DNA of 64,000 nucleotides from Ministeria vibrans ATCC 50519 (lineage: Eukaryota > Protista > Filasterea): NCBI GenBank assembly GCA_943704425.1, contig CALSCP010001494.1, forward strand, positions 86,848 through 150,847, given 5' to 3'. The position numbers and the translations under genes were made by a program. The notes under the pieces were generated by a model. The model was not told where the DNA came from. It did no database searches and was given only the letters and a program-made list of their open reading frames with translations. This document shows, in pieces, positions 24,293-28,541 of the stretch. Numbering within the stretch: the stretch's first letter is position 1; every line of letters begins with the position of its first letter.

Positions 24293-26906
24293 ATGCTTCG
24301 TTTGGTCTTTGTCGCGTCGCTTATTGCCGTGGCAAGTAGTGTGCGCCTGCCACCCGTCATTGGCTCCAACATGGTGCTTCAGCGGGCCCCCACTAAGGCT
24401 GTTCTGTGGGGTACGAGATGGTTTGGATGTCACCGCCAGACCTGTGACTGGCGCGTTCCCGCCCCCCTCCCCCCCCCCATCAGCACCCACTGGGCCTCTT
24501 TCTAATGGGTCTTTGTAGGCTGGGGTGCGCCAAAGGACACTGTGAAGCTGGTTCTTGTCGAAAAGAGCATTTCGACGACGGCCACTGTTGATTCGCGTAC
24601 GGTCTACGCTGCGCGCCTCGCCTTCCGCCTCCTGCACGATTCACATTCTCACCCACGCCTCCTTCTCTCCCTCTCCTTGTTCTTTTCCTTCTTTCTTTTT
24701 CGTCTGTTTTTTTTTCCGTTGTCTCCTATTGTGTATTGTGTGTTGTAGAGGGTGCTTGGAAGGCCCACTTCGATCCTGTCGCTCCCGGCGGTCCGTTCAC
24801 CATCACCATTACAGACTCTGCCAATACGACGACGCTGCACAATGTGTTGTTTGGCGATGTGTTCTTGTGCTCGGTAGCAAGAAACGCCAATGCAAAGCAC
24901 AGCCCGTCACACTCATCCGTGTATTGTTCTGCAGGGTCAGAGCAACATGGAATTTTCTGTGTCCATGGCGTTTAACGCAACAAACGAGATCACAGCCGCC
25001 GGTGACTTTCCTTCCATTCGCGTGTTTACTGGTACATTGTTGTTGTTTTTTTTCCAACCTGTAATTACGTTTTTGTCTCATCTCATCTGTTCATTAGTGA
25101 ACAAGAATGTGTCGCTCACGCCGATTGACACGTTCTCGTCGGCCGCGCCGTACGAGTGGGGTGTGAGCAGTCCCACGACCATTGGTGGACCGCAATGGCA
25201 ATACTTCTCGGCAACGTGCTACTTCTTTGGTCGCGAAGTGTACAAGCGTGACCAGACAGTGCCGGTAGGACTGGTGGCGAGTGACTGGGGCGGAACCTAC
25301 GTGCAGGCATGGAGCTCGCCCGACGCACTTGCTCAGTGTAACACAACAGCGACGGCAGCATCGCCACCTGTGAAGCACATGCTAGGCGATCCAAACCCGA
25401 ACCAGCCGTCAGTTCTGTGGAACGCCATGATTTACCCTCTGCTCAACGTATCGTCGAACATTGAGCGTTTTCCGAGAATCTTCTCACACCCATTGTTTTA
25501 AATATTGTTGTTGCAGATGCGCTTTGGCGGGTTTGTATGGTACCAGGGTGAGGCCAATGCCAAAGACGCAGACCATTACACGTGCATGTTCTCCGCCATG
25601 ATCAGCGACTGGCGCGACAAGTTTGACGCCACTGTCCACGACACCCCCTTCCTCTTTGTCCAGCTCGCCCCGTACGTCGACAGCGGCAATAGTAACTTCC
25701 CGGCGCTTCGCTGGGCTCAGACGGTAAGGCAACATGATAAGACAGTGACAGAGTGTATGTGTATTCTCTGATTGTGCGTGTGTGTTTCTTTTCGAACAGG
25801 GTGCTCTGAAACTTCCTAACGTGGGAATGGCCGTTGCAATTGATCTCGGGTGAGTATATCAGAATAATAATAATAATAATAATTATTATTATTAATGTTA
25901 TTATATATACGTGCGTATGTGTATCTAACAAGTATATTTTTGAGTAGTGATCCAACCTCTCCTTTTGGCTCCATTCACCCCCGAAACAAGCAAGAAGTAA
26001 GTGTGTGAGTGGTCATTGTGTCTCTATGTGGGGTGTTGTTGAAGTGGTAACTGACTGTGTGTTGCGAGCGAGTGTATGTGTGTATAAGTGTGATTTTTCA
26101 ACTGACAATCTGCTGTGTGTAGGTTGGTCGGCGCCTGGCACTCTGGGCTGAGCGCATAATGTACCATCGCGATGTGCCTGCCAGTGGGCCCGTGCCTGCC
26201 AAAGCCACCCGTCAACAGTGTACGATACACCCAGATAAGAGTGACTTGGCCATGAGAGAGAGAAAGAAAGAGATAGAGAGACAGAGAGGAGGGGGAAAGA
26301 ACAAAGTGATAGAGAGACAGAGACCAAGTGAGAGAGAAGANNNNNGGAGAGACCAAGTGAGAGAGAGAGAAACAAATTCATAGAGAGAGGAGAGATAAAG
26401 TTACAAAGTGATAGAGATCAAACTCTCCTTCTTTTTTTAGTTGGTGATAAGTGGATGATCACTTTGACATTTTCCAACAGTGAACTTCTGACTCTCATTG
26501 GCACTGAGGTATGGAAAAGAGGCACAACCGACAACGACCGCAACTCACTGTTATATGTGTCAATCAATCGACTTAGGCGTGTGACGAGTGCTGTCGGGTG
26601 GCGGGTGCTGGTTTTGAACTGCAGCAGGATGACGGGACGTGGGAGACGGCTGACGCTGCTTTTGTCAACCAAGGTGGAGCATGAGAGAGACAGAGCGAAG
26701 ACGCAAACGCACAGTCACAAAAACACAAAAATACGCATAATGTACTCACACTTCTCTTGTTTTGTGTTGCAGCGTCTGTGGTCGTGTCCAAGAGCGGCAG
26801 CGGTACTCCTGTGGCGGTGCGCTTTGCCTGGTCCGAGTACCCTCAGTGCGCTCTCTACAACTCGGCTCTGCTTGCGAGTGCGCCCTTTGAAGTCCCTTGT
26901 GCCTAA
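24293..26906 (+). CDS. SIAE: Sialate O-acetylesterase (SGNH), secreted/lysosomal, multi-exon
   Basis: Signal peptide, GSNMVLQR, FGDVFLCS|GQSNME, FSATCYFFG, GLVASDWGGT, LWNAMIYP, WYQGEAN, VQLAP, IHPRNKQEV, VRFAWSEYPQCALYN..PF. Confidence 0.92.
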
Positions 26907-26974
26907 CACTTACACAACTTTAGCTTCTTCCTATTGCTTCTCATCAGCTGTATACGATGTGACCAATCTGTTTT

Positions 26975-28105
26975 TCATTCCACCCACGGCATGCGTGGCA
27001 AGTCCACCGGCGTGGCGTTGCAGAACTTGAAGTGGTCTTCGTCGTAAAACCCTTTGCATTGCCACGTCACGTTGGTCTGGTCGTACGGCACGTTTCCCTT
27101 GTACTTGGGCACAGGGCGTCCGCCAAAGCACTTTGGACACCGTCCCCATGCGCCATATAGTGCTCCGTCTAGAAACAAAGAAAACGCAGACGCGCCAGTT
27201 TCTTCACTTGGTCTCCACCCTTTGTCTTACCCACGACACGCGCGAGACATTCGGGTTTGTTGGCGGGCTTGACCATGCCATTCTTCCCAAGCAGTTCTTT
27301 GAGTGCCACCAAGGAGTACTTTTCGTACTTCTCCTTCAGCGAGTCGTACTTGAGACGGTCTGCCGACATCCCCTTTGCCTTCTTCTTCACAGGTGTCACC
27401 TTCTTCTTAGGCACAGTCGCCGCCTTTGTCGGTGTCGCCTTCTTGGGTGTTGCCTTTGTCGGTGTCGCCTTCTTGGGTGTTGCCTTTGTCGGTGTCGCCT
27501 TCTTGGGTGTTGCCTTTGTCGGTGTCGCCTTGGCCTTTCTGGCTGGCGTTGCGTCCTTCTTCACAGTTGTCTTGGCAGCAGATGCCCTTTTAGTGGGCTT
27601 CTTCGCCGGCGCCGTCTGATCACTGTCGTCGTCACTCTCCGAGTCGGAGTCCGTTGCGGTGGCGGCAGCAGCAGCAGCAGCAGCCGCGCGCGATGATGGT
27701 TTCCGCACTCGCCCGCCCGTCACAGCCGTTGCGGGAGCAGCCGACTTCTTCTTCCCCTTCGCCCCCTTTGCCGGTGGAGTCGCGGTCTTTGCCACAGCCT
27801 TCTGCTTGGGAGAGGCGCCCGCCTTGGCGGGTGTGGCAGAAGTGGCCTAACAAGAGAGAGAGGGCATTTTTTTGAAATTTGTTTATAAACAAATTTAGGT
27901 TCTTCCGTACGACAGTGTAGCGACTGCGGCTCTTTGAAAGTGCTCCAGCTTTGGTCATTTTGGCGAGTTCTGCTGTGATCTTTGTCATGTACTTGTTGGC
28001 GTCGGTGCCGTAAAGGGTCTTGGCAACGGCCGTCACTGTGCTTCCATTTCGCTCTTTCAGCTGAGAAATCGAGTCCAGGATCTTGCTCGACAGTGAGACG
28101 GGCAT
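26975..28105 (-). CDS. Linker histone H1-like protein fused to a C-terminal PADR1 (PARP1 Zn3-like) domain; 3 exons
   Basis: Exon 1 (28105-27911) winged-helix SKILDSISQLKERNGST..AGALSKSRSRYTV; exon 2 (27846-27231) K/A/P/T tail then LKELLGKNGMVKPANKPECLARVV; exon 3 (27168-26975) DGALYGAWGRCPKCFGG..WQCKGFYDEDHFKFC..RMPW; both splices keep frame. Confidence 0.8.
27415..27532 (-). repeat. 30-bp coding tandem repeat (KATPKKATPT) in the H1 tail
   Basis: gcctttgtcggtgtcgccttcttgggtgtt x3.5. Confidence 0.9.
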
Positions 28106-28235
28106 CTCGTAAGAGTCACAAAAGCCAGACGCTAAGAAGATAAGAAAGTGATCAGCGTTTGAGATTTCAGGACTCACAGTTCACTTCAGAAACTAAACCC
28201 TCAAATTAATATCAAAACTCAAACAATTTTATCGT

Positions 28236-28541
28236 ATGGCGGCTGAAAAAGAGAGAATACAGCGCGCTGTTGTGAGACTGGAGGCGTACGCCGTATCGCA
28301 AGGATACGAGTCAGCTGGATGCGACGACTCAAACACGACTTCGCGACTCACTTCAATAACAGCCTTTCTGGAGGCTCTTGCGCCTGCACCTGATGCAGAC
28401 GTGCCAGAGGACGCTGATCAAGAGACGTTGCCATCGACTGGCGCAGCGAAGGAGTCAAGGGGGAAGGCAGCGAAGAAGAAAGCGGAACGGAAAGAGACAT
28501 CCAAGGAGACAAAGAAGAAGAAGGGCTGTATTGTAATGTAG
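28236..28541 (+). CDS. 101-aa single-exon protein with RLE-like helices, polybasic tail and CaaX box (CIVM)
   Basis: ATG to TAG intact; ends KETKKKKGCIVM; N-terminal RIQRAVVRLEAYA. Confidence 0.75.
   Translation: MAAEKERIQRAVVRLEAYAVSQGYESAGCDDSNTTSRLTSITAFLEALAPAPDADVPEDADQETLPSTGAAKESRGKAAKKKAERKETSKETKKKKGCIVM

Follow-up and report, generated by a model that had tools for sequence, protein, structure and literature searches.

The window, i.e., the whole stretch of 64,000 nucleotides that was analysed, contains on its minus strand a gene of three exons, whose in-frame joining gives a protein of 334 aa. The protein is predicted to comprise a winged-helix domain of the linker histone type (H15), a basic tail of the H1 type, and a C-terminal PADR1 domain, of the kind known as Zn3 in PARP1. 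The features of this H1-PADR1 fusion gene, in window coordinates, are as follows:

28105-27911 (-): exon 1, 195 nt, 65 codons, ATG at 28105-28103; predicted divergent H15 winged-helix domain, without an N-terminal tail
27910-27847 (-): intron 1, 64 nt, GT..AG, phase 0
27846-27231 (-): exon 2, 616 nt
27352-27846 (-): main part of exon 2, H1-type tail, as assigned from composition and motif count
27619-27651 (-): acidic patch DSDSESDDDSD, residues 131-141
27422-27531 (-): tandem repeat encoding ATPTKATPKK units, 30 nt x 3.7 copies with 100% matches (Tandem Repeats Finder)
27231-27351 (-): end of exon 2, predicted helical, SAP-like N-terminal half of PADR1 (KYDSLKEKYEKYSLVALKELLGKNG...ECLARVV and the first base of the split Asp codon)
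27230-27169 (-): intron 2, 62 nt, GTAAGA..TAG, phase 1, inside the PADR1 domain
27168-26975 (-): exon 3, 194 nt including the stop codon at 26977-26975, predicted zinc-ribbon half of PADR1

The exons, joined by a script with a check of the frame, give 1005 nt, i.e., 334 codons and a stop codon, with no internal stop. The V-D-G stretch is rebuilt across intron 2 (junction GTG/G..AC/GGA), and the listing of open reading frames divides the gene into the frames 27169-27795 (-) and 26975-27178 (-). Both the splitting of the domain between two ORFs and the model of three exons joined in frame at GT-AG junctions had been described in the first-pass annotation of this DNA, and both hold: the frame of 334 codons is intact, the two introns are absent from transcript-like contigs, and the peptides quoted in that annotation are present in the sequence. 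No further minus-strand ATG occurs upstream of the one at 28105-28103 as far as 28235. The stop codon lies two codons past the closing RMPW of the domain. The gene downstream of the 3' end of the fusion is convergent, on the plus strand. With the stop directly behind PADR1 and a gene in the opposite orientation beyond it, neither a WGR or BRCT exon nor a catalytic one comes after PADR1, as the same annotation had stated. The host genome has a size of 29.7 Mb and short introns.

Expression of the fusion gene and its neighbours

The fusion gene is real, spliced, and expressed. In runs X1 and X3 of study P1 and in run X5 of study P2, contigs lack exactly the positions 27169-27230 (62 nt) and 27846/7-27909/10 (64 nt), and both gaps have CT..AC ends on the plus strand, which correspond to GT..AG on the strand of the gene. 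The confirmation of splicing at the RNA level that had been suggested in the first-pass annotation is provided by this precise removal of the two predicted introns in two studies. The contigs of the DNA-like run X13 are colinear with the genome, keep both introns, and contain zero joints. Transcript-like contigs extend in the 5' direction to at least 28132. No contig of X1, X3, X5, or X13 reaches across all three exons; the breaks are confined to the perfect 30-nt repeat (27422-27531) in all runs, and because the contigs of the DNA run break there too, the break represents an effect of assembly rather than a transcript boundary. In run X5, a poly-A loose end is present at 26943, on the contig of the neighbouring gene, which indicates that the material of this run is RNA-derived.

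The convergent neighbour (26771-26943, plus strand) has its poly-A site at this position 26943, where it overlaps, at its 3' end, with the 3' UTR of the histone gene; loose ends matching 26644-26673 reveal its intron (26674-26770). The head-to-head neighbour (28232-28541, plus strand) contains a 101-aa ORF that starts at 28236, and its contigs begin at 28232 or 28233 in two runs. As these starts are only ~130 nt away from the ATG of the histone gene, a bidirectional promoter shared by the two genes is probable. One contig of X3, in this run only, joins 28108 to 28252 on the plus strand, skipping 143 nt with GT..AG ends (donor GTAAGA). The joint suggests a spliced plus-strand transcript that is antisense to the start-codon region of the histone gene and enters the small neighbouring gene, whose ATG at 28236 it bypasses. 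The same contig includes exon 1 of the histone gene and a part of its exon 2.

Domains of the predicted protein

The assignment of the N-terminus to the H1 type, made in the first-pass annotation, agrees with the results of our analysis. Exon 1 matches the Pfam family Linker_histone (PF00538) with 24.0 bits at a cut-off of 22.4 (E 4.6e-5, profile positions 5-62 of 74), and it resembles the canonical H1 encoded in the same genome on contig C928 (50% identity over 22 aa, pairwise E 2e-7), with which it has the LKERNGS motif in common. On the strength of these similarities, exon 1 probably encodes an H15 domain, which scores marginally above the cut-off. The single-sequence AlphaFold2 model of exon 1 consists of one long helix (pLDDT 64.5). 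A phmmer search of the PDB sequences with this short single piece gave no match to H1 or H5, and its nearest named clusters in the ESM Atlas are bacterial winged-helix families with low scores (0.80-0.81). The canonical H1 gene of the genome is located at G000:C928:21480-22800 (L002); the sequence for its H15 domain is interrupted twice, first by a short intron and then by a gap of ~1.15 kb, and a tail of the KKAAAP type comes after the domain.

The region encoded by exon 2 is rich in Ala (22%), Lys (21%), Thr (13%), and Pro (10%); the (S/T)PxK/R motif occurs ten times in it, and a run of nine Ala residues and the acidic patch DSDSESDDDSD are also present. This composition and the motif count bear out the earlier description of a Lys/Ala/Pro tail with CDK-type sites and an acidic patch. 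The identity of 100% between the 3.7 copies of the 30-nt repeat points to its recent expansion. The Pfam scan of whole exon 2 at E up to 1 detected no family, including the model of the helical N-terminal part of PADR1 (PF21728), and a search for homologues in the protein collection with the tail gave no match.

Exon 3 encodes a zinc ribbon of the form C-x2-C-x23-C-x11-C, followed by R-x-P-W. Its score with the Pfam family Zn_ribbon_PADR1 (PF08063) is 19.8 bits (E 7e-4), below the cut-off of 25.1, so that of the two Pfam models named for comparison in the first-pass annotation, PF00538 reaches its cut-off (24.0 bits) and PF08063 does not (19.8 vs. 25.1). Since the Pfam models fall below their cut-offs on the PADR1 pieces of the window, the assignment to PADR1 rests on a family-specific profile, built from 14 stand-alone homologues with the window's own row left out. 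With this profile, exon 3 scores 69.2 bits at positions 45-105, and the 40 residues at the end of exon 2 reach 12.5 bits at positions 3-42. The two positions that are absent between these matches correspond to the Asp whose codon is divided by intron 2 and to the first Gly encoded by exon 3. In the genome-wide search with the profile of alignment A1, the end of exon 2 matches positions 31-152, adjoining the match of exon 3. As the end of exon 2 and exon 3 abut on the profile, splicing restores one continuous PADR1 domain. The four Cys, as well as the closing Arg and Trp, are invariant in alignments A1-A3, the window row included. A C-terminal PADR1 domain with all four Cys retained, which the first-pass annotation had recognized, is thus supported by both the family profile (69.2 bits) and the invariance of the Cys columns.

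For the searches of structure, either single exons or natural homologues were used as queries, and the fold was modelled on the homologue P0013, a domain-only protein whose ribbon is 40% identical to that of the window. The AlphaFold2 model of P0013 has a pLDDT of 93.8. All 13 best PDB matches listed by Foldseek for this model are PARP1 Zn3 domains, 12 of them, including 2riq, 4dqy, and 7s81, with TM scores of 0.67-0.72 over ~104 columns. The next after them are SAP domains of Tho1, DEK, and PIAS, on which the helical half of the model superposes. The structural comparison with PARP1 Zn3 that the first-pass annotation had in view is therefore positive for the homologue, while the domain of the window itself is matched by the profile. 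The profile of A1 also matches PARP1 Zn3 in the PDB (2riq, E 9.9e-12; 2jvn, E 2.7e-10), and the three clusters of the ESM Atlas that are nearest to exon 3 all contain PF08063 (best score 0.89). The phmmer searches of PDB sequences with each exon, i.e., with short pieces, gave no PARP1 or H1 and only chance-level matches (CW fingers and designed repeats). Taken through the family profile and the model of the homologue, the end of exon 2 and exon 3 are predicted to form one PADR1 domain with the fold of PARP1 Zn3.

An artefact, i.e., a chance arrangement of ORFs, a chimeric assembly, or a dead gene, is a highly improbable explanation of the locus. While the RNA nature of the runs is only guessed and no one contig covers the three exons, the introns were removed precisely and canonically in two independent studies and retained in the DNA run, and X5 is marked as RNA-derived by the poly-A end on the contig of the neighbour. 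Moreover, the sole break falls on a perfect repeat that also breaks the DNA contigs, the frame is intact across 334 codons, and the domain profile runs on over the splice site. It is also quite unlikely, in our estimation, that the N-terminus is a generic winged helix and not a true H15, which would make the protein another DNA-repair or chromatin factor of the "basic tail plus PADR1" kind. The marginal H15 score (24.0 vs. 22.4 bits), the shortened wing, the phmmer search of the PDB without H1 or H5, the bacterial winged-helix neighbours in the ESM Atlas (0.80-0.81), and the build of the closest PADR1 relative, the Hemimastix protein P0001 with a basic tail and without a globular domain, would all be in line with such a protein. 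On the other hand, the match to PF00538 exceeds the curated cut-off of Pfam, LKERNGS and 50% identity over 22 aa link exon 1 with the canonical H1 of the genome, and the tail that comes next is typical of H1, (S/T)PxK sites included.

The PADR1 family and the apparent novelty of the fusion

An exhaustive HMMER search of 1.84 billion representative proteins with exon 3 resulted in 16 matches, none of them as strong as 1e-10. Real relatives account for 14 of these matches. Twelve of them carry the matching segment at most ~20 residues from the C-terminus, and a PARP catalytic domain is present in none of the 14. Together with exon 3 of the window, they form the 15 sequences of alignment A1, in which Pfam recognizes Zn_ribbon_PADR1 in 12, PADR1_N in 10, SAP in 10, zf-PARP in three, and BRCT in one, some of the 10 SAP-matching members having also a separate SAP domain. 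The closest member that we found is P0001 of Hemimastix kukwesjijk, with 60% identity in the ribbon and with a basic tail that lacks a globular domain. Further members are encoded by Paramecium (named in UniRef "PARP1-like PADR1 domain-containing protein"), a foraminiferan, MMETSP algae, and many metagenomes, to which the clusters of the ESM Atlas add plants, rotifers, and haptophytes. The relatives L034, L013, L016, L039, and L026 pass the PF08063 cut-off. The motifs of the family are P(R/K)CPxC(G/F)GG, CxG(F/Y)xD(D/E)D.F..C, and R.PW; their counterparts in the window are RCPKCFGG, in which the leading Pro/Leu is replaced by WG, CKGFYDEDHFKFC, and RMPW followed by the stop. The partners of PADR1, identified with Pfam or by eye, comprise zf-PARP with SAP, Lys-rich stretches resembling the H1 tail without a globular domain, acidic-basic tails, BRCT, and SWIM-like fingers. 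These profile and motif matches place the module of the fusion in an old and widespread PADR1 family that is devoid of a catalytic domain.

This family is known in outline (Ashraf et al.), and stand-alone PADR1 has already been noted in Tetrahymena (PMC6502085). The metagenome loci L022-L024, L032, L040, and L048 have in-frame stops inside the conserved PADR1 domain, which a genetic code of the ciliate type would explain. The family seems to be common in ciliates.

The PARP1 of the same genome, encoded on contig C1877, contains zf-PARP, PADR1, and WGR; its gene is located at G000:C1877:13866-16251 (L001), with zf-PARP, short-ribbon PADR1, and WGR exons. An ORF of low complexity, rich in poly-Tyr/Asp, is present near it on the same strand (L001, 772-1215). 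The WGR domain was detected in the genome only on contigs C1877 and C2175. The Zn3 of this PARP1 has the short ribbon of the PARP1 type and scores 12 bits on the stand-alone profile, compared to 69 bits for exon 3, and because of this low score the PADR1 of the histone is not a recent copy of it. We therefore ruled out an origin by recent duplication of the genome's own Zn3, and the proposal of the first-pass annotation that the module is PARP-derived does not stand in any recent sense. That annotation had also pointed to the replacement of the activating Trp (W318 of human PARP1). The residue at this place is indeed replaced, by Phe, but the loss of an activating function does not follow, as Phe is present also in the genome's own PARP1 and almost all members of the stand-alone family have an aromatic residue there. 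An inactive module was for this reason rejected as an interpretation.

The architecture of the fusion was looked for in 19 related proteins and in the reading frames that had matched at 39 metagenome loci, with Pfam run on 24 of these sequences. Among the relatives so inspected we found no orthologue with the same architecture, and the collection returned not even the protein of this genome. In the tblastn search of the 39 metagenome PADR1 loci with exon 1 and a piece of the canonical H1, no significant H15 was detected upstream. The search of the protein collection with alignment A2 gave just 7 matches, its list of candidates being filled by low-complexity words. The only similar relative that was inspected is L034, which combines an H15-like start with SWIM-like and PADR1 regions. 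It is an intron-less ORF of 493 aa (L034:1002-2480, metagenome contig Ga0257110_1005067, protein P0047), whose start scores 20.4 bits with PF00538 (E 6e-4), below the cut-off and over the same profile span as that of the window; a SWIM-like zinc finger, SAP/PADR1 above the cut-off, and a Ser-rich acidic end follow. The N-terminus of L034 has no direct similarity to exon 1 and could therefore represent at best a distant or an independent case; in the protein collection it found only the protein of L034 itself. Three related proteins, P0002, P0018, and P0020, begin with a region rich in Lys and Pro, which is followed by SWIM and PADR1. Our search of the literature found no description of PADR1 joined to a linker-histone domain, in keeping with the earlier impression that the combination of H15 and PADR1 had not been reported. 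The fusion thus apparently joins parts from two known families in a new combination, and its novelty lies in domain shuffling and not in a new kind of system.

Possible function and comparison with known systems

We propose, with a probability of about 0.6, that the fusion is a variant linker histone in which PADR1 adds a second folded contact with DNA or chromatin and helps to bridge or compact chromatin. The H15 winged helix and the Lys/Ala/Thr/Pro tail with CDK-type sites would place the protein on nucleosomes and linker DNA in the way of H1, as is expected from its membership in the H1 family. The C-terminal PADR1, with its SAP-like helical pair and four-Cys ribbon, would provide the second folded contact at the far end of the tail, by which the bridging or compaction of chromatin could be aided, and phosphorylation of the tail may tune this effect. 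The usual C-terminal position of PADR1, the resemblance of one of its halves to SAP, and the fact that all of its partners bind DNA favour an autonomous contact of the module with DNA or chromatin. The Zn3 of human PARP1 reportedly contacts DNA and is needed for the compaction of chromatin by PARP1 (Langelier et al. 2010, J Biol Chem), which, added to these points, suggests a bridging or compacting variant of H1. To our knowledge, PARP1 Zn3 has been studied only within the enzyme. While the identities of the parts are well supported, the mechanism is one that we infer, and the roles of PARP decoy, damage sensor, or compaction factor put forward in the first-pass annotation are likewise hypothetical.

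H1 and PARP1 oppose one another on chromatin. A different and rather unlikely role of the fusion would be that PADR1 serves as a protein bridge to WGR and catalytic domains, so that the histone acts in trans on the PARPs of chromatin, either as their cofactor or as a decoy, by recruiting, activating, or blocking them. In PARP1, Zn3 bridges Zn1, WGR, and the helical domain (4dqy and 7s81, which are among the top Foldseek matches), the aromatic character of the W318 place is kept here as Phe, and many relatives are built like PARP1's N-terminal half, with zf-PARP, SAP, and PADR1, but have no enzyme part. The genome has at least one WGR locus besides PARP1 (C2175), and the authors of the Tetrahymena study suggested that PARPs devoid of these domains might depend on further proteins as factors (PMC6502085). 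What speaks against a bridge to PARPs is that the PARP1 of the genome has its own Zn3, hence no missing part to supply, and that the stand-alone family is far from PARP1 Zn3, as seen from the long insertion in the ribbon and the cross-score of 12 bits. Less likely still is a more general possibility, namely that PADR1 docks on the WGR-catalytic part of PARP or competes with PARP1 Zn3, and that the whole family consists of trans-acting PARP cofactors. If such docking took place, chromatin marked by H1 would directly gate local ADP-ribosylation, and the DNA-binding heads of the family would deliver the cofactors. A PARP-directed role of the histone would be the more interesting outcome, and it would tie H1 occupancy directly to ADP-ribosylation.

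Whether as the bridging linker histone that we prefer or as a partner of PARPs, the fusion may offer a simple natural system for the action of PADR1 without the enzyme, be it bridging and compaction or contact with PARP. As the gene shows, the Zn3-type module has an independent existence, in a widespread and unstudied family in which it is mostly C-terminal and accompanied by many DNA-binding heads. The short list of linker-histone variants would also gain a member with a structured domain at the C-terminus.

The fusion resembles the members of the stand-alone PADR1 family in the C-terminal position of the module, in its motifs, and in the presence of a DNA- or chromatin-binding part ahead of it, often with a Lys-rich tail. 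It differs from them in its N-terminal partner, which here is an H15 domain passing the Pfam cut-off. With PARP1 Zn3 (2riq, 2jvn, 4dqy) the predicted domain has in common the helical SAP-like half and the four-Cys zinc ribbon, the start LKELL..N....RV.DG..(F/Y)GA..C..C, the closing R..W, and an aromatic residue three positions ahead of the fourth Cys. However, the second and third Cys are separated by 23 residues here and by 12 in human PARP1, and the domain of the fusion has the YD(E/D)DHF motif of the stand-alone family. It forms the C-terminus of the fusion, which lacks zf-PARP, BRCT, WGR, and the catalytic domain, whereas Zn3 is internal in PARP1. The similarity to the linker histones H1/H5 (PF00538) concerns the predicted winged-helix globular domain with LKERNGS and the long Lys/Ala/Pro-rich tail with (S/T)PxK sites. 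The differences are the absence of an N-terminal tail and the shortened wing in the fusion protein, the acidic Ser/Asp patch and poly-Ala run within its tail, and, in comparison to canonical H1, which has no such domain, the folded zinc domain at its C-terminus.
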